DNA of 64,000 bases from Eukaryota sp. TZLM1-RC (GCA_040285825.1 JAUPSS010000010.1:248001-312000); one strand, 5' to 3'. Counted from the first letter of the stretch, positions 3,351-59,400 are shown. A program made the numbers and translations. The notes: a model not told the origin generated them from the sequence alone.

Positions 3351-3417
3351 TGTAATTTGCCCAATAATCTGTTATGCAAATGTGGAGCTGGTTTGACACT
3401 ATCACATTTATTCAATT

Positions 3418-6500: not shown

Positions 6501-7553
6501 GAGTTCGTCGAAAATTTGATTAGCGACCTCTAGCCTGGCTGGATTCAGGGTCCTGGGGGGTCTTCTAACTCTGACGTCTTCATTGTAGAAGTTGATTTTC
6601 ATGAGAGGGCAATCAATACCTTCAGCGTGAGGCTTGAGGGTAAATACGTCTTCGAACTCTTTCAAAGTTTGAAGTAGGGACTTCTTGAAATGGTCGTTGT
6701 CGAGGTTGATGGTACAACCAGATGAGTTGATGTGTTCCAACCAACGTGTGGAAACGTTGACGACTTCTGAAGCTTGTGATATTCGATGATCGAATTCGGC
6801 TTCAGGTAATAGTAATGTGCGACAGGCGTCGTCCATTCTAATGTAAATGCCCTTGTTGTTCATCAGTTCAAGGTGACTCAACAAGTCAGCACCAATGAGA
6901 ATGGTCTCATGTCCAGGAACGATGCTGAACTTGTGTTTCACATGTACAATCTGGGTAACACTACCTAGTCTAATGCTAAGGGTTCCAGAAGCAGTACCAA
7001 GGGAATGTGAGGTAGTTCCATCAGCAATCTTGTAGGATATGGTTTCGTTGGAACGTGCCATGTTACAATTACTGATGACGTCTTCCGTGACTACAGAGCA
7101 TGATGCGTCAGAGTCGATTATGCCTTTAACTTCGACATTGTTGATCGAGAAGTTTAATTGTAGGCAGTTGGTTGTGGACTTCATGGATTGTACCATGAAT
7201 ATTGTATCAGAATCGTATTCAGCTTGTTCTGAGAAGAAATTAGCTTGAATGTTGTGTGTCTTGGTATGTTCCAAAATGGCCAAAGGGTTGATTAGGGAAT
7301 CTTTCCCTGTTGTGCTTTCTGTGTGGGGATGTGTTGTATTTGTAGGGGGTATGGTTTCAAAAATGCGTAAATAGTGACGGGAACGTTTATTATATGATGA
7401 AGAGCCTCTGCCTCTGCCGCGAGTGCCTCTTCGACTACGGAAACCAGAACCTCTAGAACCTCTGCCTCGAGCTTGCTGTTGAGCTTGTTGCTCTCTCCAC
7501 TTTTTGCTTCTTTGGCAGTCCTCACTGGGGCACCTTTCAGTCGGATGACCCAT
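3560..7553 (-). pseudogene. pol: pol region of family A (protease, RT, RNase H, integrase, chromodomain-like), with a frameshift near 4416 and a stop at 4142
   Basis: IIDSDAS (DSG in other copies), LDFPKAFWQ, FGLKNVP, YIDDII, SCDASD, FTDHQN, HHCC, HSDNGPEF, EEHIIEKVL...VQWPG. Confidence 0.92.
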
Positions 7554-10500: not shown

Positions 10501-10713
10501 ATCCTCTGGAAGGGAACTTTCTTCCCTTGGGATGGAACCCTCAGGGAGAGTGTCTTCAGGAAGCGCAAAAGCTTCTACTGAAGAAGAGGGCACGGGAGCT
10601 GGGTCTGTCGTTAGTTGAGAGGAAGAGGGACCAGTCTCTTCCTCGTGGATCCTGCGTTGAGCCGTTGACGACCCAATACGTATTGATGGTCTAGGCTGGT
10701 TAGTGTCAGACAT
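7554..10713 (-). pseudogene. gag: Very long gag region of family A: Pro/Ser-rich extension, unknown globular domain, capsid-like helical region, CCHC knuckle; interrupted by stops and indels
   Basis: ORF pieces 8965-10713, 8554-8934, 7832-8643 and 7656-7860 join into the pol frame; zinc knuckle CNFCKQMGHPTERC near 7530-7572; the homologous copy at 58000-60270 reads through some lesions. Confidence 0.8.
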
Positions 10714-10831
10714 ACAGAGTAAAAGTAATGAGATTTATTACGAAGAGGAATTGCATTCTCTCTTCTTAAACTAATAGGCCGAATACTAATAAACTATCTA
10801 AATAAGCTATAAATACTATTCAAGACTAACA
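10684..10831 (-). repeat. 5' LTR of family A element (contains the ORF start codon at 10713)
   Basis: Direct repeat of 3418-3565, followed by palindrome CAATACGTATTG at 10674-10685. Confidence 0.95.
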
Positions 10832-10835
10832 AATT

Positions 10836-11164
10836 GCAATATATTTATTTCTTATCGTTCTACTTTGCATGATGCAGTCAGAAATCAAATCCATGCAATG
10901 TGTAAATGCTATCATATTGAATCATTTGTAGAACCTTTGTTAAGGTCTCTTGATATAAATGAAAACGTAAGAGATTCAGAATATGGAAAACGACTTGCTG
11001 ATGTTGTTGTGCCCTCTTTTGATGATGTCTTGAATGTTGTTGATGTCGTAACAGTGGATGTTTGCAAGAAAAATGCCTTGAGAAATGCACAATCCGAAGT
11101 ATCCCCCCTTGAATTTTTGCTTGATGATATCCAAAAGTTTGTGAGTAGCTACACAAAACAATAA
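10836..11164 (+). mobile_element. Fragment of RLE-type non-LTR retrotransposon (CCHC plus PD-(D/E)xK endonuclease region)
   Basis: HDAVRNQ...VEPL...KRLADVVVP...VVDVVTVDVC, matching 51074-52354. Confidence 0.8.
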
Positions 11165-11317: not shown

Positions 11318-12340
11318 ATGAAAACTCCTACATCCTTGGCACTCAGTATATCAGGTGTATATATAAGCTTTTTGTTTTATGGTCTGTTACAGGAGTCGAT
11401 TACTAAGGAGGCCTGGGATGGCGAGTCTTTCACCTTCTTCTTCTTTCTTGTCAGTCTTACATGTGCTGTCAATGGTCTTTGCGGCTGGTTGTTCCGATTT
11501 GTGTTTCCTTCACTGTGTTATTGCTCATATACCCCGAAGACTCTCCTATTCAAAATATCATTCACTTATGTCGGATCCATGGTCACGTCAAATCTCAGTC
11601 TTTTGTGGCTCACTTATATATCAAAGGTGTTGTTGAAGAGTTGTAAAATGGTCCCTGTTCTGTTAGGTGGTCTCTTACTCAGAAAAACTAAGTATTCTTG
11701 GAACAAATACGTGTCTGTTGTCTTTATTTCTTTGGGCATTGTTGTTTTCATGTATTTTAAACCAAATTCTGCTCATCCGTCTCCTAGGGAGTCTCTTGTT
11801 TGGCCTGGTGTTCTTTTGGCATGTTTATCTCTTTTTTTTGATGGCCTCACTGGTGCTAATCAAGACCTTTGTGTTTCGCACTACAAGACCTCTGTTACCG
11901 AGTTTATGATTTACATCAATTATTATGGGGCTCTTATAATGCTCTTTATTTCGGTTTTCACTGGAGAGGTGTTGTCTGCATTGTCGTTTATTTATCGTCA
12001 TCCCGCTATTCTTCCTACAATTCTCCTATTCTGTGTTGTTGGCGCTATTGGTCAAGTTCTTATTTATCAGGTCCTCAGCCTCTCGTCAGCCTTGGTTCTT
12101 GCAACAGTTACTACCACAAGAAAGTTCTTTACTGTTTTGTTGTCGGTTCTGGTTTTTGGACATCGTCTCCATTATTTACAATGGAGTGGTGTTGTTTTGG
12201 TGTTTGGTGGATTATCTGTTGAAAAATTATGGAAAAGAAAGTTGCCATTAGTGAAAGACAAGACATGTTTTTCTTCTGAGGTGGAGATGTTTCTGGATCT
12301 CAAGTCCGACCAAGTGGATTTGGGAACTCAAAAAGTTTAG
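11318..12340 (+). CDS. SLC35B1: SLC35B1/HUT1-like UAA-family nucleotide-sugar transporter
   Basis: Intact 340-aa multi-TM ORF with YGLLQE, KSCKMVPV, DGLTGANQD, GQVLIY and VTTTRKFFTVLLS motifs. Confidence 0.85.
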   Translation: MKTPTSLALSISGVYISFLFYGLLQESITKEAWDGESFTFFFFLVSLTCAVNGLCGWLFRFVFPSLCYCSYTPKTLLFKISFTYVGSMVTSNLSLLWLTYISKVLLKSCKMVPVLLGGLLLRKTKYSWNKYVSVVFISLGIVVFMYFKPNSAHPSPRESLVWPGVLLACLSLFFDGLTGANQDLCVSHYKTSVTEFMIYINYYGALIMLFISVFTGEVLSALSFIYRHPAILPTILLFCVVGAIGQVLIYQVLSLSSALVLATVTTTRKFFTVLLSVLVFGHRLHYLQWSGVVLVFGGLSVEKLWKRKLPLVKDKTCFSSEVEMFLDLKSDQVDLGTQKV

Positions 12341-15820: not shown

Positions 15821-16081
15821 TAATTTTGTCAAGTGTGTAAGTTTTATAAAAGTAATTTATATGAGTTCAAAATAAAATGTTGGTACTGTCAAAATTTGGA
15901 ACAACTTTCTGAGAAGTCTAATGAGTTGAAAACTTTTGTCACAACACGATAAGTTTCTTACAAAATTTGTTTAAAACTCATCCCCATTACATTCTTGATT
16001 ACATTCCCCAAAACAAATTCATGCCAAAATAAATTCAGAAAACTTGCAGAGCATTGTTTATGATTTTTGTGGTATTTACAG

Positions 16082-16993
16082 ATGTCTTCTCATGATGCCT
16101 CACTCAATGTACACCCAACATGTTCCATGTGTAAGATTCATAATATAGACAATCATCTACTATTTGTCACAACACCAGAACCTCATGAATTAGCATTTCA
16201 TGTATTCGAATCTGATGACGATAATAATGATAATGTACCAGTGATTGCAGTCCATGGTCTCACACGTACAAGCCATGATTTTGATGAAATCGCTCGCGTT
16301 CTCAAACACCAGGGAACTGTATATTGTTTAGATATGCCTGGAAGGGGACGATCACAGCCTTTAGCTTTGCCTGAGCACTACTCATACAACACTTATGTCA
16401 ATGATGTATTTTCCTTCCTGTCCTACGCCAATCTTGGTTCTGTTAATTGGATTGGTTCCAGCATGGGAGGTATTTTGGGAATGTTGATAGCTTCACGTCC
16501 CAACTCACCTATCAAAAAGTTGGTATTGAATGATATTGGGTATTTTATCCCTTTTATTGCTCTCAAACAGATTTCTGAGAATGTGTCACAGACTGGACCT
16601 TTCCGTTCTTATGAACTAGCGGCTCAGCATCTTCGAAATGTTTATGCTCAATTTGGTTTCACTACAGAAGAAGAATGGAATCACTTTGTGGAAGTTTCTG
16701 TCAAGAAAGTTGACGATAACTACTACTTGCATTACGATCCTGCCATTGCTTCACAATTTCAGAAATCGGTTCAAAACGAGCAGGACATAGACCTCTGGCA
16801 AATATGGGAGACAATTGATATTCCAGTATTGGTTCTTCGAGGTGAAGAATCCATTATTTTACCAAAGGAAGTTGCAGATAAAATGGGAGAAAAAGACAAC
16901 TGTACTGTAGCTGAGATTAAGAATTGTGGACACTGTCCATCGCTCACCAGTAGAGAACACATTGACTTGATAGCTGGCTTTTTTAGCAGATGA
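16082..16993 (+). CDS. Alpha/beta-fold hydrolase of bacterial type
   Basis: HGLTR, CLDMPGRGRS, nucleophile elbow WIGSSMGG, LVLNDIG, HYDPAIA, VLRGEES, GHCPSL. First ATG at 16082. Confidence 0.85.
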   Translation: MSSHDASLNVHPTCSMCKIHNIDNHLLFVTTPEPHELAFHVFESDDDNNDNVPVIAVHGLTRTSHDFDEIARVLKHQGTVYCLDMPGRGRSQPLALPEHYSYNTYVNDVFSFLSYANLGSVNWIGSSMGGILGMLIASRPNSPIKKLVLNDIGYFIPFIALKQISENVSQTGPFRSYELAAQHLRNVYAQFGFTTEEEWNHFVEVSVKKVDDNYYLHYDPAIASQFQKSVQNEQDIDLWQIWETIDIPVLVLRGEESIILPKEVADKMGEKDNCTVAEIKNCGHCPSLTSREHIDLIAGFFSR

Positions 16994-18131: not shown

Positions 18132-20874
18132 ATGTCTCTAAAACAGTCAACAGCAGCTTCTTCTATACAACCTACTATCTCCTTACACAAACAACAATGT
18201 ATAACTCCTTTTTGGGATGGTTTGTAATATTTCCTGTGTTTCATTAACCTTAGGTGGACCCCTCTGTAACTCGCATGACAATCGTTATTTTTACACATCA
18301 AGTGGATCCAATATCCGTGTCATCGACACTCATTCACTTCCAACATCCACCATTCACCCTTCTGAACAAGCTTCCATTGTTTCTATTACCACTGCACCTA
18401 ATCTTCTCGCCGTTTCCCACTCTAATAATATCATTCGTATATATAACACCAACCACACTTCCCTCTCTTCACTCTCTTCTCTTCGTCTTCCCATCAAAAG
18501 CTCTACCGTCACTTCAGCCATGGCATTGGATTCAGATGGTTTTCGTCTCGCTGTGGGAACGACTGATGGACAGTGCTTGGTCTACAACATTGCCAGCTCC
18601 ACAGGTGCTGACCAATCTCAGGTCATGTCACCCAAAGTCGCCTGTATCACTTTGATTGGTTCTAGTCCAATCAAATTGATTAGATTTGTTCAAGGTTGGG
18701 ACAATGAATTTTTGGTTGGTTTTGAATCTGGAAATTTGGGAATCTTTTCAATTAAAAACAAAAAATTTAATGAATTTTTTGACTTTCAATCGAATTTGAT
18801 TGATTTATTGATCGTTAAATCCTTTTTGTTTGCAGTGGGGCACGACGGTAGAGTCTGTATGTTCAAAATGCTCAATCAAAATGATAGCAATCATGATTTG
18901 ATTGATTGCTCACACTATTCAACTGTTTCTTTGATTCAAACCCCATCATCAATCATTTTTCAATCGAACCATCTCTTAGTTGCCGGAAACCAAGGAAGTA
19001 TCAACGTGATTGATATTGATTTCATCGAGGGTTTAATAACTCTCGATGACGATCACAGTCATTTTCCCAATCGGAAACTAACTCCGCTTTTGGAAAGTCA
19101 GTCAATCACGAATTCTGGTACTCCACTAGTGAAGTTGATCAACTGCACTGATGATAACTCTTTTTGGTCAATAGATTCTGAAATGACTTTTACATTGATT
19201 AATTTAGATAATAATTTAGTATTCAAAGACACTGCTGGTTATCTAGGTTTTCCCGAAGATATTATCGATTTAGTCACTATTCCACTCAAGGACTTCACTA
19301 ATGATGGTTTGCAGGGTCAAAAAGTTGACGTGAAAGGTCAGAATGCCGTTGATTTTTTCACAATTGCGGCAACACAAACCAATCATTTATTACTCATTAA
19401 GGATAGTCAGTTTAAACTCTTTACTGGTCATTCTGATATAGTAATGTCAATTGACTGGAGACGAGCTGAAATTTTCAAGGGTTTGGAGAAGGGATCATTC
19501 GGGCTATTAGTTACTAGTGGTAAAGATGGCGTAGTTATTGTTTGGAATATTTGTTATAATCAATCAAAGAATAATTACCTTCCCTTTTTGACACCAATCA
19601 CTTCAATCAAGATGACGTGCCCAGTCAGTTTGGTCAAGCTTGGTCTTGTTAAGAATGATCTTTTTGAACTTTTCACGGTTTCTGCTGATGGAGTTGTTAA
19701 AAAATTCACAGTCAACCACGATGGCAATCCCCAAAATTTAAAAATTTCCAACAATTGGAACCATTACGGATCTTCAAAAGACATCAACTCTTTAGATGTC
19801 TCTGTCAATAATAAATACCTCTCCTTCGCCGGCCAAGACAAAAATCTATCTTTGTTGCTATCAAAAGACGGTTCTGTTGTGTCGAAAGTTCAAAAAGCTC
19901 ATAAAAGAGGTGTGTGGTCAACGGAATTCTCGACTTTTGAACGAGCTATTGTGACCTGTGGAGCTGACGGGTTTGTTAGAATGTGGTCAGTACCAGATTT
20001 ACAGCTAGTCAAGACTTTTCAAGGTCACACGTCACCAGTTCTAAAATCATTTATTTTAAACCCCAATCAAATTTTTTCCCAGTCAGCTGATGGATGTGTT
20101 CGTATTTTCAATGTTAAGACAGGTTCAGTTGATTGTGTTGTAGCAGTCACTAATTGTAAACTTTGGTCTTGTGGGTTCTTTGGTTGGCCAAGGAAAATCC
20201 AACACTTTAAAAGTTTCGAATATGTCACCAAATATTTGGTTTTGGGATCGGCTGAAGGTGAAATTTTCTATTATATTGATAATTCAAGGGACATTTTGGA
20301 AGCTCAGCTTGCTGAACGAGAAGAATTGATACAGCAAAAAGAAAAATTAAATCGTTTATTTAAACAACAAGAATATTTTTCAGCTGCCAAATATGCACTT
20401 TCTCTGGATTTCTCGAAGGGTCTTTTAAAGTCAATTCCCTTTTTGACCAATGATGAGTTGTCACGATTCGTTGAAGAACTTTCCACGCCATTTACTGAGT
20501 GTGTAGGTCAAAATGATGATGTCGGTCGATCAGAATTAGAAAGACTTTTTGATCTGGTCTGTAATTGGACAGGTTTTTCCAAGTATTCTTTTACTGGAAT
20601 CAGAGTGTTATTCACAATTCTGCAGCATTACTCATTTAAAGAATTACAGAAGGTTAAGTCGATAGAATCGTATTTGACAACACTTTTGCCACTATGCCAG
20701 CGTTATTTTGATCGGGTATCACGTTTACAAAAGTCAATAAAAATGTTTGGTCAAGAAAATTCCTCTAGTTTTGAGCTTTCTATGGACTCGAATTCTTTTA
20801 ATGATGTTGGTGAAATTAATAGTATTTTTAATTCTATTTCCGTTTTAGATCGTCAGCAAAGTTTAATTCAATAG
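18132..20874 (+). CDS. UTP13: U3 snoRNP WD40 protein Utp13/TBL3, with a 34-nt intron at 18220-18253
   Basis: WD40 repeats, KDINSLDVSVNNK, AHKRGVWSTEFS, FQGHTSPVLK and a helical C-terminus ending QRYFDRVSRL. Removing the GTTTGT...TAG intron links ATG 18132 to PFWDG|GPL. Confidence 0.85.
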
Positions 20875-29373: not shown

Positions 29374-32300
29374 TGATGCCGTTAGGCAGAAATACCAAAG
29401 ATGAAAAGAAGAAAAGAGAGCTTTATTAATTAAAATACTTGTTCTTGAACAAGTGCCACGTCATCATGTGAATTCCTCATCTGTTTACCAAGTTAGTTTA
29501 TCAGTAACAACAACACTACTTCTTCCCATTTTCTTTCAACAGTTTCGTAAACCATTTAGCATAATGAAGATAGGGGATTTGTGAAATACTGAGGCACGTG
29601 GTGTAGATGATTTACTTCGTGCTTAACATTTGAGGGGCAATCACGAGCTAGATGACCTTTCTGATAACATTTAAAACATGTCCCGTCAGTCAATTTGCGA
29701 CACGTATGGGATGAACGAAACTTCATGCCAGCTTGATGCACAGAGTCAGTATTTTCAAGAACAGTCTTTAAAGACCTGTTCCAAGAAGCTACTCGCGTGC
29801 AATCATGTAGTTCATCCTTTGCGGTATTTACCAATATAGGAAAATCGGGGAATACCTCGTCCCGAATTCGAGAAATCAGAAATTTCTGCAATCCTAATAA
29901 AAAAAATATTCGTGGCGAATCTGATCATTAAGGTTGAGTCAGGCATTTTGAGTCCGGAAGCCCTGCTTTTGCCTGAAAAAACCTCCCAGGTAGCAGGATA
30001 TACGTTCACGAACGTCGCCCTTACGGACCTCAAATTTCAACTTAGACATCACCAAGTTGAATCCCTCGTACGAGGAAAACGAAGTGGGGGATCTTAAATG
30101 ATCCAGCAAAATTTCATTGGATGAATCGACCCCAGTTATTGTGAGAACCAATGATTCTAACAAGAAGGGGTCAACGAGGAGCCTTGCTGGAACAAACTTT
30201 TTCTTCAAAGTAGCAGAAGAGTACACCTTCCACTGTTGTAGGAACAACAGAACATCATCCACTTCCATAGAAGCAAGGGACGAATGTGGTAATTGTGTAG
30301 ATAACTTCTGCAATGAGGACCAATAATTACTGATGCCGTTAGGCAGAAATACCAAAGATGAAAAGAAGAAAAGAGAGCGTTATTTATAAAAATACTTGTT
30401 TTTGAACAAGTGCCACGTCATCATGTGAATTTATGTCTGTCTACTAAGTTAATGTATCAGTAACAACAAAACTACTTCTTCCCATTTCATTTCAACAGTT
30501 TCGTAAACCATTTAGCATAATGAAGATATGCGATTTGTGAGATATTGAGGCACGTGGTGTAAATGATTTACTTCGTGCTTAACGTTTGAGGGGCAATGAC
30601 GAGCTAGATGGCCTTTCTGATAACATTTAAAACATGTCCCGTCAGTCAATTTGCGACACGTATGGGATGAACGAAACTTCATGCCAGCTTAATGCACAGA
30701 GTCAGTATTTTCAGAAACAGTCTTTCAAGACCTGTTCCAAGAAGCTACTCGCGTGCAATCATGTAGTTCATCCTTTGCGGTATTTACCAATATAGGAAAA
30801 TCGGGGAATACCTCGTCCCGAATTCGAGAAATCACAAATTTCTGCAATCCTAATAAAAAAATACCCGTGGCGAATCTGATCATTAAGGTTGAGTCAGGCA
30901 TTTTGAGTCCGGAAGCCCTGCTTTTGCCTGAAAAAAACCTCCCAGGTAGCAGGATATACGTTCACGAACGTCGCCCTTACGGACATCAAATTTCAACTTA
31001 GACATCACCAAGTTGAATTCCTCGTACGAAAAAAACGAAGTGGGGGATCTTAAATGATCCAGAAAAATTTCATTGGATGAATCGACCCCAGTTATTGTGA
31101 GAACCAATGATTCTAACAAGAAGGGGTCAACGAGGAGCCTTGCTGGAACAAACTTTTTCTTCAAAGTAGCAGAAGAGTACACCTTCCACTGTTGTAGGAA
31201 CAACAGAACATCATCCACTTCCATAGAAGCAAGGGACGAATGTGGTAATTGTGTAGATCACTTCTGCAATGAGGACCAATAATTACTGATGCCGTTAGGC
31301 AGAAATACCAAAGATGAAAAGAAGGAAAGAGAGCGTTATTTATAAAAATACTTGTTTTTGAACAAGTGCCACGTCATCATGTGAATTTATGTCTGTCTAC
31401 TAGGTTAATGTATCAGTAACAACAAAACTACTTCTTCCCATTTCCTTTCAACAGTTTCGTAAACCATTTAGCATAATGAAGATATGCGATTTGTGAGATA
31501 TTGAGGCACGTGGTGTAAATGATTTACTTCGTGCTTAACGTTTGAGGGGCAATGACGAGCTAGATGGCCTTTCTGATAACATTTAAAACATGTCCCGTCA
31601 GTCAATTTGCGACACGTATGGGATGAACGAAACTTCATGCCAGCTTGATGCACAGAGTCAGTATTTTCAGAAACAGTCTTTAGAGACCTGTTCCAAGAAG
31701 CTACTCGCGTGCAATCATGTAGTTCATCCTTTGCGGTATTTACCAATATAGGAAAATCGGGGAATACCTCGTCCCGAATTCGAGAAATCAGAAATTTCTG
31801 CAATCCTAATAAAAAAAATACCCGTGGCGAATCTGATCATTAAGGTTGAGTCAGGCATTTTGAGTCCGGAAGCCCTGCTTTTGCCTGAAAAAAACCTCCC
31901 AGGTAGCAGGATATACGTTCACGAACGTCGCCCTTACGGACATCAAATTTCAACTTAGACATCACCAAGTTGAATTCCTCGTACGAAAAAAACGAAGTGG
32001 GGGATCTTAAATGATCCAGAAAAATTTCATTGGATGAATCGACCCCAGTTATTGTGAGAACCAATGATTCTAACAAGAAGGGGTCAATGAGGAGCCTTGC
32101 TGGAACAAACTTTTTCTTCAAAGTAGCAGAAGAGTACACCTTCCACTGTTGTAGGAACAACAGAACATCATCCACTTCCATAGAAGCAAGGGACGAATGT
32201 GGTAATTGTGTAGATCACTTCTGCAATGAGGACCAATAATTACTGATGCCGTTAGGCAGAAATACCAAAGATGAAAAGAAGAAAAGAGAGCGTTATTTAT

Positions 32301-35300
32301 AAAAATACTTGTTTTTGAACAAGTGCCACGTCATCATGTGAATTTATGTCTGTCTACTAGGTTAATGTATCAGTAACAACAAAACTACTTCTTCCCATTT
32401 CCTTTCAACAGTTTCGTAAACCATTTAGCATAATGAAGATATGCGATTTGTGAGATATTGAGGCACGTGGTGTAAATGATTTACTTCGTGCTTAACGTTT
32501 GAGGGGCAATGACGAGCTAGATGGCCTTTCTGATAACATTTAAAACATGTCACGTCAGTCAATTTGCGACACGTATGGGATGTACGAAACTTCATGCCAG
32601 CTTGATGCACAGAGTCAGTATTTTCAGAAACAGTCTTTAGAGACCTGTTCCAAGAAGCTACTCGCGTGCAATCATGTAGTTCATCCTTTGCGGTATTTAC
32701 CAATATAGGAAAATCGGGGAATACCTCGTCCCGAATTCGAGAAATCAGAAATTTCTGCAATCCTAATAAAAAAAATACCCGTGGCGAATCTGATCATTAA
32801 GGTTGAGTCAGGCATTTTGAGTCCGGAAGCCCTGCTTTTGCCTGAAAAAAACCTCCCAGGTAGCAGGATATACGTTCACGAACGTCGCCCTTACGGACAT
32901 CAAATTTCAACTTAGACATCACCAAGTTGAATTCCTCGTACGAAAAAAACGAAGTGGGGGATCTTAAATGATCCAGAAAAATTTCATTGGATGAATCGAC
33001 CCCAGTTATTGTGAGAACCAATGATTCTAACAAGAAGGGGTCAACGAGGAGCCTTGCTGGAACAAACTTTTTTTCTTCAAAGTAGCAGAAGAGTACACCT
33101 TCCACTGTTGTAGGAACAACAGAACATCATCCACTTCCATAGAAGCAAGGGACGAATGTGGTAATTGTGTAGATCACTTCTGCAATGAGGACCAATAATT
33201 ACTGATGCCGTTAGGCAGAAATACCAAAGATGAAAAGAAGGAAAGAGAGCGTTATTTATAAAAATACTTGTTTTTGAACAAGTGCCACGTCATCATGTGA
33301 ATTTATGTCTGTCTACTAGGTTAATGTATCAGTAACAACAAAACTACTTCTTCCCATTTCCTTTCAACAGTTTCGTAAACCATTTAGCATAATGAAGATA
33401 TGCGATTTGTGAGATATTGAGGCACGTGGTGTAAATGATTTACTTCGTGCTTAACGTTTGAGGGGCAATGACGAGCTAGATGGCCTTTCTGATAACATTT
33501 AAAACATGTCCCGTCAGTCAATTTGCGACACGTATGGGATGAACGAAACTTCATGCCAGCTTGATGCACAGAGTCAGTATTTTCAAAAACAGTCTTTCAA
33601 GACCTGTTCCAAGAAGCTACTCGCGTGCAATCATGTAGTTCATCCTTTGCGGTATTTACCAATATAGGAAAATCGGGGAATACCTCGTCCCGAATTCGAG
33701 AAATCACAAATTTCTGCAATCCTAATAAAAAAAATACCCGTGGCGAATCTGATCATTAAGGTTGAGTCAGGCATTTTGAGTCCGGAAGCCCTGCTTTTGC
33801 CTGAAAAAAACCTCCCAGGTAGCAGGATATACGTTCACGAACGTCGCCCTTACGGACATCAAATTTCAACTTAGACATCACCAAGTTGAATTCCTCGTAC
33901 GAAAAAAACGAAGTGGGGGATCTTAAATGATCCAGAAAAATTTCATTGGATGAATCGACCCCAGTTATTGTGAGAACCAATGATTCTAACAAGAAGGGGT
34001 CAACGAGGAGCCTTGCTGGAACAAACTTTTTCTTCAAAGTAGCAGAAGAGTACACCTTCCACTGTTGTAGGAACAACAGAACATCATCCACTTCCATAGA
34101 AGCAAGGGACGAATGTGGTAATTGTGTAGATCACTTCTGCAATGAGGACCAATAATTACTGATGCCGCTAGGCAGAAATACCAAAGATGAAAAGAAGGAA
34201 AGAGAGCGTTATTTATAAAAATACTTGTTTTTGAACAAGTGCCACGTCATCATGTGAATTTATGTCTGTCTACTAGGTTAATGTATCAGTAACAACAAAA
34301 CTACTTCTTCCCATTTCCTTTCAACAGTTTCGTAAACCATTTAGCATAATGAAGATATGCGATTTGTGAGATATTGAGGCACGTGGTGTAAATGATTTAC
34401 TTCGTGCTTAACGTTTGAGGGGCAATGACGAGCTAGATGGCCTTTCTGATAACATTTAAAAACATGTCCCGTCAGTCAATTTGCGACATGTATGGGATGA
34501 ACGAAACTTCATGCCAGCTTGATGCACAGAGTCAGTATTTTCAAAAACAGTCTTTAGAGACCTGTTCCAAGAAGCTACTCGCGTGCAATCATGTAGTTCA
34601 TCCTTTGCGGTATTTACCAATATAGGAAAATCGGGGAATACCTCGTCCCGAATTCGAGAAATCACAAATTTCTGCAATCCTAATAAAAAAAATACCCGTG
34701 GCGAATCTGATCATTAAGGTTGAGTCAGGCATTTTGAGTCCGGAAGCCCTGCTTTTTGCCTGAAAAAAACCTCCCAGGTAGCAGGATATACGTTCACGAA
34801 CGTCGCCCTTACGGACATCAAATTTCAACTTAGACATCACCAAGTTGAATTCCTCGTACGAAAAAAACGAAGTGGGGGATCTTAAATGATCCAGAAAAAT
34901 TTCATTGGATGAATCGACCCCAGTTATTGTGAGAACCAATGATTCTAACAAGAAGGGGTCAACGAGGAGCCTTGCTGGAACAAACTTTTTCTTCAAAGTA
35001 GCAGAAGAGTACACCTTCCACTGTTGTAGGAACAACAGAACATCATCCACTTCCATAGAAGCAAGGGACGAATGTGGTAATTATGTAGATCACTTCTGCA
35101 ATGAGGACCAATAATTACTGATGCCGTTAGGCAGAAATACCAAAGATGAAAAGAAGGAAAGAGAGCGTTATTTATAAAAATACTTGTTTTTGAACAAGTG
35201 CCACGTCATCATGTGAATTTATGTCTGTCTACTAGGTTAATGTATCAGTAACAACAAAACTACTTCTTCCCATTTCCTTTCAACAGTTTCGTAAACCATT

Positions 35301-38300
35301 TAGCATAATGAAGATATGCGATTTGTGAGATATTGAGGCACGTGGTGTAAATGATTTACTTCGTGCTTAACGTTTGAGGGGCAATGACGAGCTAGATGGC
35401 CTTTCTGATAACATTTAAAACATGTCCCGTCAGTCAATTTGCGACATGTATGGGATGAACGAAACTTCATGCCAGCTTGATGCACAGAGTCAGTATTTTC
35501 AAAAACAGTCTTTAGAGACCTGTTCCAAGAAGCTACTCGCGTGCAATCATGTAGTTCATCCTTTGCGGTATTTACCAATATAGGAAAATCGGGGAATACC
35601 TCGTCCCGAATTCGAGAAATCAGAAATTTCTGCAATCCTAATAAAAAAATACCCGTGGCGAATCTGATCATTAAGGTTGAGTCAGGCATTTTGAGTCCGG
35701 AAGCCCTGCTTTTGCCTGAAAAAAACCTCCCAGGTAGCAGGATATACGTTCACGAACGTCGCCCTTACGGACATCAAATTTCAACTTAGACATCACCAAG
35801 TTGAATTCCTCGTACGAAAAAAACGAAGTGGGGGATCTTAAATGATCCAGAAAAATTTCATTGGATGAATCGACCCCAGTTATTGTGAGAACCAATGATT
35901 CTAACAAGAAGGGGTCAACGAGGAGCCTTGCTGGAACAAACTTTTTCTTCAAAGTAGCAGAAGAGTACACCTTCCACTGTTGTAGGAACAACAGAACATC
36001 ATCCACTTCCATAGAAGCAAGGGACGAATGTGGTAATTGTGTAGATCACTTCTGCAATGAGGACCAATAATTACTGATGCCGTTAGGCAGAAATACCAAA
36101 GATGAAAAGAAGGAAAGAGAGCGTTATTTATAAAAATACTTGTTTTTGAACAAGTGCCACGTCATCATGTGAATTTATGTCTGTCTACTAGGTTAATGTA
36201 TCAGTAACAACAAAACTACTTCTTCCCATTTCCTTTCAACAGTTTCGTAAACCATTTAGCATAATGAAGATATGCGATTTGTGAGATATTGAGGCACGTG
36301 GTGTAAATGATTTACTTCGTGCTTAACGTTTGAGGGGCAATGACGAGCTAGATGGCCTTTCTGATAACATTTAAAACATGTCCCGTCAGTCAATTTGCGA
36401 CACGTATGGGATGAACGAAACTTCATGCCAGCTTGATGCACAGAGTCAGTATTTTCAAAAACAGTCTTTCAAGACCTGTTCCAAGAAGCTACTCGCGTGC
36501 AATCATGTAGTTCATCCTTTGCGGTATTTACCAATATAGGAAAATCGGGGAATACCTCGTCCCGAATTCGAGAAATCACAAATTTCTGCAATCCTAATAA
36601 AAAAAATACCCGTGGCGAATCTGATCATTAAGGTTGAGTCAGGCATTTTGAGTCCGGAAGCCCTGCTTTTGCCTGAAAAAACCTCCCAGGTAGCAGGATA
36701 TACGTTCACGAACGTCGCCCTTACGGACATCAAATTTCAACTTAGACATCACCAAGTTGAATTCCTCGTACGAAAAAAACGAAGTGGGGGATCTTAAATG
36801 ATCCAGAAAAATTTCATTGGATGAATCGACCCCAGTTATTGTGAGAACCAATGATTCTAACAAGAAGGGGTCAACGAGGAGCCTTGCTGGAACAAACTTT
36901 TTCTTCAAAGTAGCAGAAGAGTACACCTTCCACTGTTGTAGGAACAACAGAACATCATCCACTTCCATAGAAGCAAGGGACGAATGTGGTAATTGTGTAG
37001 ATCACTTCTGCAATGAGGACCAATAATTACTGATGCCGCTAGGCAGAAATACCAAAGATGAAAAGAAGGAAAGAGAGCGTTATTTATAAAAATACTTGTT
37101 TTTGAACAAGTGCCACGTCATCATGTGAATTTATGTCTGTCTACTAGGTTAATGTATCAGTAACAACAAAACTACTTCTTCCCATTTCCTTTCAACAGTT
37201 TCGTAAACCATTTAGCATAATGAAGATATGCGATTTGTGAGATATTGAGGCACGTGGTGTAAATGATTTACTTCGTGCTTAACGTTTGAGGGGCAATGAC
37301 GAGCTAGATGGCCTTTCTGATAACATTTAAAACATGTCCCGTCAGTCAATTTGCGACATGTATGGGATGAACGAAACTTCATGCCAGCTTGATGCACAGA
37401 GTCAGTATTTTCAAAAACAGTCTTTAGAGACCTGTTCCAAGAAGCTACTCGCGTGCAATCATGTAGTTCATCCTTTGCGGTATTTACCAATATAGGAAAA
37501 TCGGGGAATACCTCGTCCCGAATTCGAGAAATCACAAATTTCTGCAATCCTAATAAAAAAAATACCCGTGGCGAATCTGATCATTAAGGTTGAGTCAGGC
37601 ATTTTGAGTCCGGAAGCCCTGCTTTTGCCTGAAAAAAACCTCCCAGGTAGCAGGATATACGTTCACGAACGTCGCCCTTACGGACATCAAATTTCAACTT
37701 AGACATCACCAAGTTGAATTCCTCGTACGAAAAAAACGAAGTGGGGGATCTTAAATGATCCAGAAAAATTTCATTGGATGAATCGACCCCAGTTATTGTG
37801 AGAACCAATGATTCTAACAAGAAGGGGTCAACGAGGAGCCTTGCTGGAACAAACTTTTTCTTCAAAGTAGCAGAAGAGTACACCTTCCACTGTTGTAGGA
37901 ACAACAGAACATCATCCACTTCCATAGAAGCAAGGGACGAATGTGGTAATTGTGTAGATCACTTCTGCAATGAGGACCAATAATTACTGATGCCGTTAGG
38001 CAGAAATACCAAAGATGAAAAGAAGGAAAGAGAGCGTTATTTATAAAAATACTTGTTTTTGAACAAGTGCCACGTCATCATGTGAATTTATGTCTGTCTA
38101 CTAGGTTAATGTATCAGTAACAACAAAACTACTTCTTCCCATTTCCTTTCAACAGTTTCGTAAACCATTTAGCATAATGAAGATATGCGATTTGTGAGAT
38201 ATTGAGGCACGTGGTGTAAATGATTTACTTCGTGCTTAACGTTTGAGGGGCAATGACGAGCTAGATGGCCTTTCTGATAACATTTAAAACATGTCCCGTC

Positions 38301-40041
38301 AGTCAATTTGCGACATGTATGGGATGAACGAAACTTCATGCCAGCTTGATGCACAGAGTCAGTATTTTCAAAAACAGTCTTTAGAGACCTGTTCCAAGAA
38401 GCTACTCGCGTGCAATCATGTAGTTCATCCTTTGCGGTATTTACCAATATAGGAAAATCGGGGAATACCTCGTCCCGAATTCGAGAAATCAGAAATTTCT
38501 GCAATCCTAATAAAAAAATACCCGTGGCGAATCTGATCATTAAGGTTGAGTCAGGCATTTTGAGTCCGGAAGCCCTGCTTTTGCCTGAAAAAAACCTCCC
38601 AGGTAGCAGGATATACGTTCACGAACGTCGCCCTTACGGACATCAAATTTCAACTTAGACATCACCAAGTTGAATTCCTCGTACGAAAAAAACGAAGTGG
38701 GGGATCTTAAATGATCCAGAAAAATTTCATTGGATGAATCGACCCCAGTTATTGTGAGAACCAATGATTCTAACAAGAAGGGGTCAACGAGGAGCCTTGC
38801 TGGAACAAACTTTTTTCTTCAAAGTAGCAGAAGAGTACACCTTCCACTGTTGTAGGAACAACAGAACATCATCCACTTCCATAGAAGCAAGGGACGAATG
38901 TGGTAATTGTGTAGATCACTTCTGCAATGAGGACCAATAATTACTGATGCCGTTAGGCAGAAATACCAAAAGATGAAAAGAAGGAAAGAGAGCGTTATTT
39001 ATAAAAATACTTGTTTTTGAACAAGTGCCACGTCATCATGTGAATTTATGTCTGTCTACTAGGTTAATGTATCAGTAACAACAAAACTACTTCTTCCCAT
39101 TTCCTTTCAACAGTTTCGTAAACCATTTAGCATAATGAAGATATGCGATTTGTGAGATATTGAGGCACGTGGTGTAAATGATTTACTTCGTGCTTAACGT
39201 TTGAGGGGCAATGACGAGCTAGATGGCCTTTCTGATAACATTTAAAACATGTCCCGTCAGTCAATTTGCGACACGTATGGGATGAACGAAACTTCATGCC
39301 AGCTTAATGCACAGAGTCAGTATTTTCAGAAACAGTCTTTAAAGACCTATTCCAAGAAGCTACTCGCGTGCAATCATGTAGTTCATTCTTTGCGGTATTT
39401 ACCAATGTAGGAAAATCGGGGAATACCTCGTCCCGAATTCGAGAAATCAGAAATTTCTGCAATCCTAATAAAAAAAATACCCGTGGGGAATCTGATCATT
39501 AAGGTTGAGTCAGGCATTTTGAGTCGGAAGCCCTGCTTTTGCCTGAAAAAACCTCCCAGGTAGCAGGATATACGTTCACGAACGTCGCCCTTACGGACCT
39601 CAAATTTCAACTTAGACGTCACTAAGTTGAATCCCTCGTACAAGGAAAACGAAGTGGGGAATCTTAAATGATCCAGAAAATTTCATCGGATGAATCGACC
39701 CCAGTTCTTGTGAGAACCAATGATTCTAACAAGAAGGGTCTCAACGAGGAGCCTTGCTGGAACAAACTTTTTCTTCGGAGTAACAGAAGAGTACACCTTC
39801 CACTGTTGTAGGAACAACAGAACATCATCCACTTCTATAGAAGCAAGGGACGAATGTAATAATTGTGTAGATAACTTCTGCAATGAGGACCAATAATTAC
39901 TGATGCCGTTAGGCAGAAATACCAAAGATGAAAAGAAGAAAAGAGAGCGTTATTTATAAAAATACTTGTTTTTGAACAAGTGCCACGTCATCATGTGAAT
40001 TTATGTCTGTCTACTAGGTTAGTGTATCAGTAACAACAACA
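29374..40041 (-). repeat. Tandem array of 11 Gag-only mini LTR element units (~957 bp) sharing 12 LTRs of ~140 bp
   Basis: LTR starts at 29374, 30331, 31287, 32244, 33203, 34160, 35119, 36075, 37031, 37988, 38945 and 39901. Each unit has the junction CAGTAATTATTG, a gag ORF ending in CFKCYQKGHLAR(D/H)C, and a PPT ending ATGGGAAGAAGTAG. Confidence 0.95.
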
Positions 40042-52440: not shown

Positions 52441-52832
52441 ATTCCAGTTAAAAAAATGGTACCAAAAATGGAAATCTTAAGTGGGTCAAATTTGTTGTTT
52501 CAGCCTCGTACTGTGTTTGATGTCGATGATGAACTTCGTATTCTCATTTGCTGGATTGTTCTGCAATTTGAGTCTATGTTGAACGTCAGAATTGGAAGTT
52601 CTATTCCAAGGAGATACAGTTGTACAATTAATTATTTGTTCACTTCCACAATACCATCCACATTGAATGTCACCTCATTTTAGGCTCATACTGAAGATTA
52701 CTTAATCAACAAGTGGTTCTAAACGAAAAGATGCCTATCCTGAAAGATTATAAATACAATCATCATAATCATGATCATGTGGTTGCTTTTTTTGAGTAAA
52801 TTTACCACATGAAACAAACTTTATGGTGAATG

Positions 52833-53930
52833 TGATGCCGTTAGGCAGATGAACACACGAAGAAGAGAGAGAAATCTGAGTTTATTAATAAAACTGATTC
52901 ATAAATGAGTATCACGTCATCAGTCGAAATACAAAGAAACCTACTAATTCAATTTGAGTTCAACAACAACACTACTTTTTCCCACTTTTCTGAGGACAAA
53001 TACAGTACTGTCTCAATAGAGGGAAGATATGGGGTTTGTTAAACTCTTTGGTGCATCGTTTGTGTGACACAAATAATTTACCTCATGTTTGATTTTAGTT
53101 GGACAATCGCGGGAGATGTGTCCAGGCTTGTGGCACTTGAATCACGATTGATTTTTTAAATCCTGAGAGCGCCAAGAGGACCTCGTTTTAGTGCCAGCCG
53201 TACGTTCCACATCATTCACTGAGGTTTTGAAACCACGAGTCCATGAAGCAACCCTAGAGCAGTCCAACAGCTCATCAGTAGTGGTTTCGACAAGAGAGTG
53301 AAGATCTGGGAATACATCATCTCGAATTCTCGCTAGTAGAGAACGTTGAAGACCTACGGGAAGAATTCCTCTGGCAAATCGATTCAGAAAAGCTGTGTCT
53401 GGTAACTTCAGTCCGGAAGCCCTACTCTTTACCTGGAGGAAACGTCGCAGGTAACAGGACATACGTTCTCGGACGTCACCAATACGGACATCAAGCTTCA
53501 GTTCTGACATAGCCAGACTAAAATCTTCGTACGTGGCGAACGATACGACAGATTGAAGATGTCTAAGAAGAACATCGTCACTGGAAGAGACGTCGGATTT
53601 CTGGAGAGATAGGGACTCTAACAGAAAAGAATCGACCAAGAGTCTTGCTGGAACAAGCTCTTTCTTAGAAGTCACAGAAGAATAGATCTTCCACTCTTGT
53701 AGGAACAAGAGAACACTTTCAACTTTCATGGAAGAAAGAGACGGGAGGTTGACAGAAGGAACAGTCATCTGAAATAAGAAGGGCCAATAATTATTGATGC
53801 CGTTAGGCAGATGAACACACGAAGAAGAGAGAGAAATCTGAGTTTATTAATAAAACTGATTCATAAATGAGTATCACGTCATCAGTCGAAATACAAAGAA
53901 ACCTACTAATTCAATTTGAGTTCAACAACA
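52833..53930 (-). mobile_element. Complete Gag-only mini LTR element (family C, 1098 bp)
   Basis: LTRs 52833-52971 and 53795-53930 identical apart from one terminal ACA; 4-bp TSD AATG; palindrome 53785-53796; PPT GAAAAGTGGGAAAAAGTAG; no pol. Confidence 0.95.
53010..53768 (-). CDS. gag: Gag of family C element (208 aa to TGA at 53142; the reading frame continues through the zinc knuckle to ~53010)
   Basis: TGA replaces the first Cys of (C)FKCHKPGHISRDC; aligned along its length with the array Gag (LLFLQxWK, LVPARLLVD, GDVRER, RIRD, RVASW, KHEVN). Confidence 0.85.
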
Positions 53931-54546
53931 AATGTTGCTTCTCATAAATAGGAAATTTATTGACTCTCTTAAATCACTTTCATCTAGATCATTAAAGATA
54001 AAGATAAACACTGAATTTTCAAAAAATTGTTGAATCACAAGGGCTTTGTACACAGCCACAATTGTTACAATGTTGACATGTAGAAAGGTAATGTGAATTT
54101 GTCCACATTGAGATTTGAAGAAAACATTATTTAATTATTTTTACATAAAGTATCAATTGATTAAGATAGTTAAGAACCGTTTAATAGCCATGAGCAACCA
54201 GTAGTAGTTAAGGGTTGTCTTAATTGAGTTGTAATATAATAAACTATAAATTTAATGGCTTAATTCACAACATTCAATATCATCAACATCATTGATGACC
54301 TTGACAATACCTAAAGAATGAACTCTCGTGGTCAAATAAAGCTTGAAATAGTTGAGTCAGTGAATCATTGGATTTAAAAACAAAAACTAATGAAGACTTA
54401 TTATCTCCATTCCAAAATATTGATTCAATGGCTCTTTGGTTCTTGTATAAAATCAGACAGATTTATTTTAATCTTGGATTGTAAAAAGGTGATGTGTACT
54501 ATGAGATTTGAAGAAAGATCTTATCGAATTATTTTTACATCAAATA

Positions 54547-56434: not shown

Positions 56435-59400
56435 TGATGGTCTTCGGCTATGATTAGGATTAATACAGTACACGTAGTGTAATTTATTACAGAGAAAAGA
56501 ATTTCCCTCAACTTAAACTAGAAGTAAATAACAATAAACTATAATACTATTCAAGACTAACACTGTCTTTTCCTCTCTTTGGAGCCACGAGCCCTAGAAG
56601 CTCTTGTCAGAGGTGGAGAAGTACTAGTTTGGGACGTTCCTTGGGAGGAGCATATTTAGTACAACAACGTGCTGTCGTGCTCTTGATAAAGTCTTGATAC
56701 GGGGCAGTATTTCGGACAGTAGACAAATGTTCGGTGGTGATCTCTTTTCCAGGCCATTGCACTTGGCAATAATCAACGTCCTGGCTGAGTACCTTTTGAT
56801 GATGTGTTTTTCGACATTACTTGCAGCAACCCATAAGAGGAACTCATCGTTGGCAGGCAGGCTTGACCGCCAGGGAGTAAGATGTTTAACGCTAGCCTGG
56901 ACAATCGTACTAGTGCAGAGGTTCTTGATTTTCACGGACGAATTCGACACGATATCGGTTATTAGAAAAGGTCCTAAATAATCTCCATGCAGCTTAGCAG
57001 AAGAGCAAGAAGCTCTTAATACCAATTGACCAACATCAAAAGGATTTGGAGTTGTTGATCTAATCAGCTTGGAAGCTTTGGAAGCTTGATGGTGTACTGC
57101 CTTTTCCTGTTTTTCTTTCAACCTACGAAATTGAGATTGAATTTCTTGAATAAAAGTTGACTCAGACGTCGATCTTTCAATGATTTCAAGGATTTTGATA
57201 AAATCAGATCTGGGCAACACATCAGAGCCAAAAATCACTTGGTATGGCGTGTGGGTTGTTATAGAGCTCGTGAATGAGTTGATCAATAATTGCACATAGG
57301 GCAAATATTCGTACCACACATGGTAGGCGTTGAAGTCTACGAGCAATATCCTCAGATTTTACAGAATGTCTCTGTGTCGGCGCTCTACCATAAAGTTGGA
57401 CTGAAACAATCTGGGAATTGACTTAGACACCTCTATGCCCAAAAATTTGCTCAATTCATCAAAGACAGCCTTGAAAAATCCGGGTCCATTATCACTGTGT
57501 CTTTGGAATGGGATGCCAAAGCTGGCACAAACTTTCCAGATTAATGCATCTGCGGTAAGATTAACATTCTTCTGATGCTTGAGATATTCGATGATTGAAT
57601 TCAGTTTCAGGTAATAGTAATGTACGACATGCGTCATCCATACTAATGTATATGCCCTTGCTGTTTATTAGTACTACGTGACTCAACAAGTCCGCACCAA
57701 TGAGAATGGTTTCATGTCCAGGAACGATGCTAAACTTGTGTTTCACATGTACGATCTGGAACTGTGAGGTGGTTCCATCAGCAATTTTGTAGGAAATGGT
57801 TTCGTTGGTACGTACCATGTTGCACCAGAGTCAATGATGCCTTTAACTTCAACATTGTTGATCGAGAAAATTAGATGTAGGCAATTTGATGTTGAGTTCA
57901 TGGATTGGATCATAAAATATTCTATCAGAATCATATCCAGCTTGTTCTGAGAAAAAATTGGTTTGGGAGCTAGTTAACTTTGAAGGTTCCAAGCTAGACA
58001 GTGGGTTGATTAGGTAATCTTCCCATGATTTGCTTTCTGTATGTGTGTGAGGGTGTGATGTCGTTGTAGGAAGTATGGTTTCAAAGACACGTAAATATTG
58101 ACGGGAACGTTTTTTAAAAGATGAAGAAGCTCTGCCTCTGCCGCGAGTACCTCTTCTGCTACGGAAACCAAAACCTCTATAAATTCTGCCTCGAGCCTGT
58201 TGCTGAACCTGTTGCTCTCTCCATTTCTTACTTCGTTGGCAGTCCTCACTTGGGCACCTTTCAGTCAGAAAACCCTTTTGTTTGCAGAAATTTCATTGCA
58301 CTTCAGCGCATGGTGAAGACGTTTGTGGCTACCTCTCCTCTTACTAGGTTTGAGGCGTTTAGTTGGGCCAGAACCTCGTTGTTTGGGGATGTCAGGTGGG
58401 AAGGGTACCACCAGTGGAGGTCAGCATAAAACCTGGTGCTGATGTGTGATCTGGTTTTGGTAGCTGAAATCAACATGATTCACTTGTTCCATGTAGAATC
58501 TGGCGTAACAGAAATTTTCGTATTCTATCTGAAGAACACTAAAGAATTCACCCAGAGTGTGACCTTTTGATGAATAATGTGAGGGGGAGGACCATATTCT
58601 CAAGAGTCTGTCCCTGATGGAGGTAATTCCTACACTTTCTGAAACATAAGTAGTAACTACCCAGTAAGAAATTCTATCCGCGGGAGAAGTAGAACTAATT
58701 GAAAAGGTGCTCAATTGTTGAGAAGGACTTCTAACATCTTGAGTGGCGGTGGAGCGAGTAAGGACTCTACCGAGGTTGACCATGAAGTCAATCCACCTGT
58801 TACCGTAGTCCCTTTTGGTTCAGTCCATGTTTGTTGCTAGGAGAGCTCGATCAGACTTATCCAGTCTGGTAAATTGTGTTCTTCTCAAAATTTGAGCCCA
58901 GATCATCCGTTTGTCTTTTGAGGTTGGAACCGTTGGAGAGGATATGATAAGGTTGGAACCTTGGTATCTGAGGGCATTAAGAACTTTAGGAGTAACACAT
59001 TCAGCGAGGCCTCAAAGGTTCATCCTCATGGCTTGATGCAACAAGTCCCATTCATGAATTGGTTCACTGGAAATGTTTCCAAAGTATTCATCGGAAGGAC
59101 GCTGGTAAACCTTCTCTAGCTTGTTCCAGTTCATCACGAAGTCTGCCAACTTCGTTAGCTGAAGCAAACTGAGCTGGATTCTCTATATTACCTCTAGTGT
59201 CTCTTTGGACTCAATCAGTACAACTCAATAGGATAAATTTGTTAAAAAAAATTTAGAAGTTTGTCAGCGTCTCTCAGTTCCGCTGCATCGAGGAAAGAAC
59301 GTTTAGGGCAATCCCTACGTCTGCCATCTTGATTTTTTTGATCCAATCATGGAAGAGTGGAGAGGGTTACTTTCATAAGTACCTGAAAATGGGAAGTGAC

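Follow-up and report, generated by a model that had tools for sequence, protein, structure and literature searches.

Terminal-repeat retrotransposons with a GAG domain (TR-GAGs) have been reported from angiosperms and from the brown alga Ectocarpus, whereas Drosophila and a red alga yielded none (PMC4350172). They measure 2.5–4 kb and carry long terminal repeats (LTRs) of about 485 bp, a 5-bp target duplication and a tRNA-type primer-binding site (PBS), and most of the described families encode a copia-type Gag (PMC4350172). In wheat, RLG_Quinta, whose autonomous partner is RLG_Cereba, RLG_Sabrina and RLG_WHAM are non-autonomous Ty3/gypsy derivatives that encode Gag (PMC11302176). An earlier note on the DNA analyzed here stated that terminal-repeat retrotransposons in miniature, or TRIMs, do not code for protein and that TR-GAGs were described from plants. 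This background is correct and incomplete, as the brown alga and the three wheat families are missing from it.

Here we describe element A, a complete LTR element of about 1.1 kb with its gag gene on the minus strand, located at positions 52833–53930 of a 64,000-nucleotide stretch, hereafter the window, from the free-living anaerobic protist Skoliomonas (TZLM1-RC; GCA_040285825.1, JAUPSS010000010.1:248001-312000). TZLM1-RC, GEM-RC1 and TZLM3-RCL are Skoliomonas metamonad isolates, and the text of the genome paper does not mention retrotransposons (PMC11316075). The label TZLM1-RC does not appear in that text, and its equation with S. litria is tentative. Units of about 1.1 kb integrate discretely with 4-bp target duplications, are numerous, and encode a Gag homologous to that of resident gag-pol elements, whose LTRs follow the same miniature design. 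Element A, together with a diverged tandem array in the window, most probably represents an old non-autonomous lineage derived from Ty3/gypsy, in which Gag is the sole gene and Pol is borrowed in trans. TR-GAG-like, Gag-only retrotransposons, reported from plants and one brown alga, are hereby extended to Metamonada, a new eukaryotic supergroup for them. Their form here, two LTRs of 100–139 bp and a 250-codon gene, is close to the most compact that is possible.

Element A, its relatives and their Gag

On the minus strand, element A consists of the 5' LTR, a 26-nt leader, gag (53768 to 53013), about 20 nt, a polypurine tract and the 3' LTR. The two LTRs, at 53795–53930 and 52833–52968, are identical at 136 of 136 positions and have TG..CA ends. 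Read in the sense orientation, the 136-bp 5' LTR contains the motifs TGACGTG and AATAAA, and the 3' LTR (52833–52971) comprises the 136 bp common to both plus a 3-nt TGT start; the LTRs of other A copies are 139 bp long, with one extra TGT at the start relative to the 5' LTR of element A. The element is flanked by a perfect 4-bp target-site duplication, AATG, at 52829–52832 on the left and 53931–53934 on the right. The polypurine tract (52972–52990, minus strand) adjoins the 3' LTR, and an equivalent tract ending in GTAG is found in all families. In these respects the earlier note, which had described essentially identical LTRs of about 136 bp, a 4-bp duplication and a polypurine tract, was accurate.

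The gag gene occupies the whole interior (756 of 828 bp) except for the leader and a trailer of about 45 nt. Its frame (53013–53768, minus strand) spans a capsid and a CCHC nucleocapsid region, 251 codons plus stop, and is interrupted in the window copy by an in-frame TGA (53142–53144, minus strand) that splits it into 208 and 42 codons. The TGA lies at the position of the first Cys codon of the CCHC knuckle in the relatives and is a singleton among 14 A copies. Broken gag frames were searched as separate pieces: the zinc knuckle (53103–53144, minus strand), which has lost its first Cys, matches Pfam PF00098 with an E-value of 2.8e-5 (24.5 bits against a cut-off of 20.8), and a Pfam scan of the 208-residue N-terminal piece returned no match. 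The gag of element A is 98% identical to an intact, annotated TZLM1-RC protein of 251 residues (P0001), and GEM-RC1 and TZLM3-RCL supply matches at a greater distance. The frame of about 250 codons with a CCHC knuckle reported in the earlier note therefore stands in its extent and in its knuckle, and not as an open frame.

A second A copy, given as 1–233 in the earlier note and cut by the window edge, lies at 1–237 (minus strand), where it comprises the start of gag and the 5' LTR; it is 97% identical to element A. Within GCA_040285825.1, element A copies are 98–99% identical in DNA to the window copy. The DNA-level sampling of TZLM1-RC covered about 270 kb. About 145 kb around an intact Gag protein (P0309) and a further locus (L001) contain nine more A insertions, of which six are monomers, two are dimers and one is a trimer. 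Across the ten insertions, window copy included, the units measure 1098–1102 bp, and each of the ten insertions has a perfect 4-bp target duplication that differs by site when the LTR is read with the full TGT start. None of the sampled A insertions has its LTR joined to a longer element. The fixed unit length in ten independent insertions implies that the deletion breakpoints do not vary.

The sampled DNA holds 14 copies of A and 24 of a diverged family, B. Intact open reading frames (ORFs) are present in 12 of the 14 A copies and in 7 of 13 B copies of one array (L002), in a sample biased towards intact copies, as the loci were fetched via intact proteins. Protein clusters at 90% identity contain 58 members for A, 42 for B and 11 for a third family, C; they are spread over many contigs, most of the listed members are of full length, and one identical Gag protein is present on seven contigs. 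In practical terms, more than 100 genes annotated as hypothetical proteins in these assemblies are Gags of transposable elements (TEs). The Gag-only elements have been recently active, as evidenced by their identical LTRs.

At least seven diverged Gag-only families were found in the three Skoliomonas assemblies, with units of 1.03–1.2 kb and LTRs of 100–139 bp. The layout of LTR, leader, gag, polypurine tract and LTR was verified for families A, B and F of TZLM1-RC, C and D of GEM-RC1 and G of TZLM3-RCL. The LTRs of C (L003) are 129 bp long and 99% identical, those of D (L004) 121 bp and 98%, and those of F (L009) 111 bp and 98%, with the duplication GACT. Family G (L008) totals 1031 bp, with 100-bp LTRs that are 100% identical and the duplication GTTC. 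Family E of TZLM3-RCL (L005) is represented by a decayed copy that keeps gag, the knuckle, the polypurine tract and the LTR start. A telomere-like run of TAACCC lies in this copy, at about 8634–8650 of L005, between the capsid part of gag and the zinc knuckle.

From sequence alone, Pfam recognizes zf-CCHC and gives one weak match to Retrotrans_gag in the Gag-only proteins. A search with a Gag profile among 1.84 billion representatives returned 397 matches, including long proteins that match the whole profile with their N-terminal 240 or so residues, namely P0044 of GEM-RC1 (1148 aa; E = 2e-37) and metagenome proteins of 1434–1492 aa. A further long gag-pol relative, P0179, was found through cluster membership. 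In P0044, P0179, P0063 and P0069 the homologous N-terminal Gag is followed by protease, RVT_1, RT_RNaseH and rve, which is the gypsy order, and three of the four metagenome gag-pol proteins scanned have a chromodomain. The Gag-only proteins align by BLASTP to the Gag of P0044 with 26–34% identity (E = 1e-24 to 1e-42); for P0001, the identity is 32% (E = 5e-41) over the full length of the Gag-only protein. The profile also matches by sequence the Gag of Rous sarcoma virus (2e-6) and of Ty3 in the PDB. No protease, reverse transcriptase, RNase H or integrase was detected by Pfam in the Gag-only ORF, where only zinc-knuckle and Gag matches occur. By homology, the Gag-only elements are classified as derivatives of Ty3/gypsy (Metaviridae).

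An AlphaFold (AF2) model computed from a 34-sequence alignment reached a pLDDT of 87.2 and superseded an earlier run on six sequences, which had given a pLDDT of 63 and weak fold matches. The model is all-helical up to residue 180 or so, followed by a linker and the knuckle. Its best matches in the PDB are capsids, as would be expected from the earlier note: those of PNMA2, Ty3, dArc1/2 and PEG10, and the C-terminal domain of the Ty1 capsid. The Foldseek probability is up to 0.85–0.91, with an E-value of only 0.3–1 and a TM-score of 0.47–0.66 on the target. Among viral folds, caulimovirid coat regions, retroviral Gag and the ORF1 of a fungal metavirus scored best (E down to 9e-4). The element A protein is a Gag, with a predicted two-lobed capsid domain and one CCHC nucleocapsid knuckle.

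Comparison of the Gag of B (TZLM1-RC) with that of C (GEM-RC1) gives a dN of 0.155 and a dS of 1.15–1.8, hence a ratio of about 0.09–0.14. Between A and B, dN is 0.29 and dS is beyond saturation. The identities at codon positions 1, 2 and 3, a measure independent of saturation, are 0.67, 0.82 and 0.41 for A and B, and 0.78, 0.89 and 0.52 for B and C. These values indicate purifying selection on Gag, with a dN/dS of about 0.1 that is approximate, as dS is saturated in most comparisons. A ratio near 1 between the subfamilies was not seen.

In a tree of the Gag domain, 12 short Gags lie on one side of a branch and 10 autonomous ones on the other, with a support of 62/74. An inner clade of nine short Gags from all three species is supported at 97/94 and a second clade, from TZLM3-RCL, at 95/95. 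The species are interleaved, with B pairing with C and F with D, implying that several families predate the species splits or moved between species. The Gags of B (L002, 6001–6753) and C (L003, 6001–6771) are 75% identical with a finite dS, and 73 codons of a host proteasome alpha subunit (L011, 2418–3198, against L004, 16580–16801) are 62% identical with a saturated dS. This comparison hints at transfer of Gag-only elements between Skoliomonas species, from a host baseline that, at 73 codons, is far too small. With at least seven families in three species, and Gags that form one clade apart from the autonomous ones, a stable non-autonomous Gag-only lineage is well supported over the one-off deletion that the earlier note had set against it.

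Autonomous relatives and the source of Pol

Compact autonomous elements of 4.2–4.3 kb were found in GEM-RC1 (L006, L007 and L010), with LTRs of 101–110 bp that are 96–100% identical; the L010 element has a 4-bp target duplication. They have in common with the Gag-only elements an LTR design with a TGTT start, TGACGTG, the poly-A signal AATAAA and a CA end, as well as an ATG within about 25 nt, a palindrome at the junction of LTR and leader, a polypurine tract ending in AG and the 4-bp duplication. The likeness is one of design, and the sequence identity is low. The TGACGTG(G)CA motif, CRE/bZIP-like, lies in mid-LTR at 53876–53888 of the window, about 30 nt upstream of AATAAA, and is kept at the equivalent place in A, B, C, D, F, L006 and L007. 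It is probably the promoter core of these short LTRs.

The junction palindrome of element A is a perfect one of 12 nt (53785–53796, minus strand) of which 2 nt close the LTR and 10 nt open the leader. Of the 12 gypsy-type Skoliomonas elements examined, both Gag-only and autonomous, 10 (representing 10 of 11 families) have a perfect palindrome of 12–20 nt across the boundary of 5' LTR and leader; besides that of element A, such palindromes were found at 10672–10685 of the window and in L003, L004 and L006–L010. They represent seven different sequences, which implies that palindromy is kept by paired changes. A conserved TGG-type tRNA PBS was not found across the families; the roughly 270 kb of sampled DNA hold no tRNA genes for comparison, and no Tf1-style complementarity between leader and LTR was seen by eye. 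Palindromic dimerization sites are known in Ty1 and Ty3. The junction palindrome may be a site of RNA dimerization or part of a tRNA-independent priming system, in place of a tRNA-type PBS.

A second candidate signal is found at the C-terminus of Gag, where the motif L-x-N-P-[IL] (53028–53042, minus strand, in element A) occurs in families A, B, C, D and G, with S as the next residue in most. Several Gag-only families have the longer form L-x-N-P-[LI]-S-S-L, as in an array copy at 29571–29585 (minus strand). Two autonomous gypsy copies of the window likewise have L-x-N-P-L, at 7281–7295 and 57999–58013 (minus strand), in the stretch between knuckle and protease; among other long proteins it is rare (1 of 132). 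Its codons differ synonymously, implying a signal at the protein level. The motif is a candidate protease or docking site that would link the Gag-only elements to a helper.

One of these autonomous-type gypsy elements, Gypsy-W (3417–10831, minus strand), is a degraded copy of 7.4 kb with 149-bp LTRs that are 98.7% identical and a pol that encodes protease, reverse transcriptase, RNase H and integrase. It shares with A and B the TGTT and CATCA ends of the LTR, a similar end of the polypurine tract, the type of palindrome and L-x-N-P-L. The palindromes are alike in type and not in sequence, and the LTR termini are alike only in TGTT and CATCA. An hhalign comparison of the Gag with the capsid-like ORF of Gypsy-W was not significant (probability 2.5%), and the pol of Gypsy-W has no close match among the TZLM1-RC pol proteins. 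Gypsy-W is a thinly based candidate for the type of helper used by the Gag-only elements. Ahead of its capsid-like region, Gypsy-W has a proline/serine-rich ORF of 582 aa with no Pfam match, and its gag region falls into several ORFs. The window has a related copy at about 56.5–60.3 kb and inverted partial copies at 12.9–14.4 kb.

No element that joins the LTRs or the Gag of A or B to pol was found in the sampled 270 kb of TZLM1-RC or among the annotated proteins returned by the searches. A word search with the Gag region of P0044 among long proteins retrieved P0044 only, and the TZLM1-RC pol proteins, found from the pol of P0044, show faint Gag similarity (E = 1e-4 to 1e-6). By tblastn, the Gag-only Gags detected no related Gag in the gypsy elements of the window, and P0044 matched the window in pol alone, at 33–44% identity. 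Within the same 270 kb, no autonomous family has a PBS and LTR termini identical to those of the Gag-only elements.

In the reading that we favor, a lineage with Gag as its sole gene and Pol borrowed in trans, the element would be transcribed from its LTR and translated into Gag, which would package the RNA of its own element. An autonomous gypsy element in the same cell would provide protease, reverse transcriptase/RNase H and integrase in trans. The gag would be kept by selection because copies with their own capsid would be packaged preferentially, and defective copies, such as that of the window, would still be carried by the Gag of sister copies.

Several observations weigh against this reading. 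No close autonomous Gag or LTR was found for TZLM1-RC in the sampled sequence or the returned proteins. The nearest autonomous Gag, that of P0044, is 32% identical and belongs to another species (GEM-RC1), and the co-assembly of so distant a Gag with a helper Gag-Pol is doubtful. Both A copies of the window and all units of its array are defective, and the sample in which intact copies prevail favors them by the way it was drawn. To the approximate nature of the dN/dS ratios is added a within-family test on A, underpowered and including one copy with compensating indels, which gave four synonymous versus four non-synonymous shared variants. Finally, the branch support of 62/74 is weak for a single origin of all short Gags.

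A more specific version holds that the short Gags form a self-perpetuating satellite clade, which arose once, radiated, outlived or left its parent, takes Pol from distant gypsy elements via short shared signals (LTR ends, junction palindrome and L-x-N-P-L-S) and may pass between species. We regard it as a possibility to be entertained tentatively.

The organization of the autonomous relatives bears on another explanation. P0044, P0179 and the L010 element encode gag-pol as a single ORF, implying that Gag and Pol are made in equal amounts; the Gag-only elements might then be mutualists that add an excess of Gag and are mobilized in return. The helpers would be of the same LTR design, the Quinta/Cereba model in wheat offers a precedent (PMC11302176), and the tail motif, which Gypsy-W has at its nucleocapsid/protease boundary, could serve as a processing or docking site. 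However, the identity of the Gag to that of any autonomous element is at most about 34%, which makes co-assembly doubtful, and the searches in TZLM1-RC revealed no partner whose LTR ends and Gag match. Such a mutualism appears rather unlikely; it overlaps with the borrowing of Pol in trans and does not exclude it.

The earlier note had also considered a dominant-negative Gag that would limit the helper, as Ty1 p22 does. In this way the elements, or the host by means of them, would poison the capsid assembly of autonomous gypsy elements, Fv1 being a further example of such an action, and the selection on Gag would reflect that role. Purifying selection on Gag, the degraded state of the autonomous gypsy copies in the window, the many Gag-only copies and the position of the second window copy inside another TE would all be compatible with restriction. 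Against it, the units that contain gag are mobile and have target duplications, identical LTRs and cis signals that are conserved, so that transposing lineages, rather than one fixed locus of the host, are what selection acts on; nor was a syntenic single-copy domesticated locus seen. Moreover, the Gag-derived restriction factors that are known target close relatives, whereas here the identity to the nearest autonomous Gag is only about 32%. We consider restriction improbable.

Tandem arrays and neighboring elements

The head-to-tail array at 29374–40041 (minus strand) belongs to a B-type subfamily and comprises 12 LTRs and 11 gag interiors, which repeat every 956–959 bp. It is about 68% identical to element A, and the identity of its units to the intact B gag from L002 is about 90%. 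The 16-nt motif of the LTR end occurs 15 times, against 0.28 expected by chance. The diverged sister subfamily of the same architecture, as announced in the earlier note, is thus present, except that all 11 of its frames are broken: compared with the intact relative, every unit has frameshifts and/or in-frame stops, and 10 of the 11 have the same 1-nt deletion. A scan with TRF, with a longest period of 500, did not call the array. No target duplication was found at its ends (cctg versus tgag), and its flanks are unrelated, the left one being an ORF for a non-LTR reverse transcriptase that is not continued on the right. An origin of the array as a simple insertion was rejected on these two grounds.

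The way in which arrays change size is seen at another locus (L012), which has two copies of a host segment at a distance of about 5.25 kb. One carries an A monomer (2655–3754) and the other a trimer (7912–10937), with the same flank and the same GTTT duplication, implying that, following a single integration, multimers gain or lose units at the DNA level. Unequal LTR–LTR exchange is the simplest account of the change in array size, and arrays would arise by such recombination at an existing insertion. The window array, with its shared lesions, absent duplication and unrelated flanks, fits the same process followed by decay. Arrays of the LTR-sharing type were seen at several loci and belong to two families. 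The TZLM1-RC genome seems rich in arrays with a period of about 1 kb; these are to be read as LTR-sharing concatemers and not as satellites. Another head-to-tail array, at 10937–14403 of L017, has a period of 1097 bp, with three units and a partial one, and abuts an A dimer. Its 149-aa ORF resembles the C-terminal part of a non-LTR retrotransposon protein.

The state of the window array could suggest that the units are dead deletion derivatives with no selected function, amplified by DNA duplication alone. All of its units are broken, with indels in common and no target duplication, and arrays do grow by recombination. This is contradicted by the ten dispersed insertions with distinct target duplications, by the intact frames of most sampled A copies, by a dN/dS far below 1 between families and by the identical layout in three species, and we consider it very improbable indeed.

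Alternatively, the long arrays and/or the frameshifts could be artefacts of assembling a repeat from Nanopore reads. The Skoliomonas assemblies are based on Nanopore data polished with Illumina reads (PMC11316075), unit lengths vary by 1–3 nt, and many indels of the array lie in A/T homopolymer runs, so that some of its frameshifts may be assembly errors. Similar arrays are, however, present at several loci and in two families, and the units differ also by substitutions and in-frame stops. An artefact of this kind is an improbable explanation, and it would bear on copy number and on the status of the frames only, not on the existence of the element.

The window as a whole is AT-rich (33–46% GC) and constitutes a TE-rich island without being a gene desert. 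Uninterrupted, intron-free host ORFs for a UAA sugar transporter, an alpha/beta hydrolase and Utp13 lie between the TEs, at 11318–12340, 16067–16993 and 18217–20874, respectively. The second A copy is inserted in a gypsy RNaseH-integrase ORF (219–1436) with RT_RNaseH, Integrase_H2C2 and rve domains.

Comparison with known systems

The Skoliomonas elements resemble TR-GAGs in their TG..CA LTR frame, target duplication, polypurine tract and lone Gag ORF with a zinc knuckle; both lack protease, reverse transcriptase, RNase H and integrase, occur in multiple copies with signs of recent activity, and have no close autonomous partner found in the genome (PMC4350172). They also show the features by which TR-GAGs are recognized, that is, an LTR frame, a length below 4 kb, at least two copies, a single Gag-like ORF and no pol domains. 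By contrast with TR-GAGs, the elements of this metamonad measure 1.03–1.2 kb, with LTRs of 100–139 bp, a 4-bp duplication and a gypsy-type Gag, have a junction palindrome and no recognizable tRNA PBS, and form one deep clade across several species. What sets them apart is the minimal size, the deep radiation into many families and the failure to find a close helper.

With Quinta, Sabrina and WHAM they have in common an intact Gag ORF, kept for tens of millions of years in wheat, and sublineages with a strongly diverged Gag (PMC11302176). Quinta has a PBS and LTR termini identical to those of its partner, an extra domain of unknown function, a length of several kb and centromere targeting (PMC11302176). 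The interior of the Skoliomonas elements is, unlike that of Quinta, Gag alone, and the search in the genome of the window revealed no partner that matches in ends and Gag. The likeness to TRIMs lies in the miniature size, the short LTRs, the dependence (a presumed one here) on trans-acting proteins and the tendency to form LTR-sharing tandem arrays; the interior of TRIMs is non-coding, whereas here it is a selected ORF of 251 codons.

As three genomes contain diverged, recently active families together with autonomous single-ORF relatives of 4.2 kb, they offer a clean natural system for the question of why a parasite of a parasite keeps its own capsid gene, be it for cis-preference, mutualism or interference. 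An analogy can be drawn with Ty1 p22/p18 and Fv1, in that a product consisting of Gag alone could interfere with the assembly of related capsids. Ty1 p22 is an internally initiated product of the full-length element and Fv1 is a fixed single-copy host gene; the Skoliomonas Gag differs from both in being the full product of its own mobile element. All examined copies lie between LTRs at differing sites, and none is a fixed, LTR-less, syntenic single-copy locus of the domesticated type represented by Fv1, Arc or PNMA.

A comparable division of labor may be seen in satellite viruses that encode a capsid, such as satellite tobacco necrosis virus, which build their own shell and rely on a helper for the enzymes of replication. 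They are extracellular RNA viruses, whereas the Skoliomonas element is an intracellular retroelement that would depend on its helper in an analogous manner.

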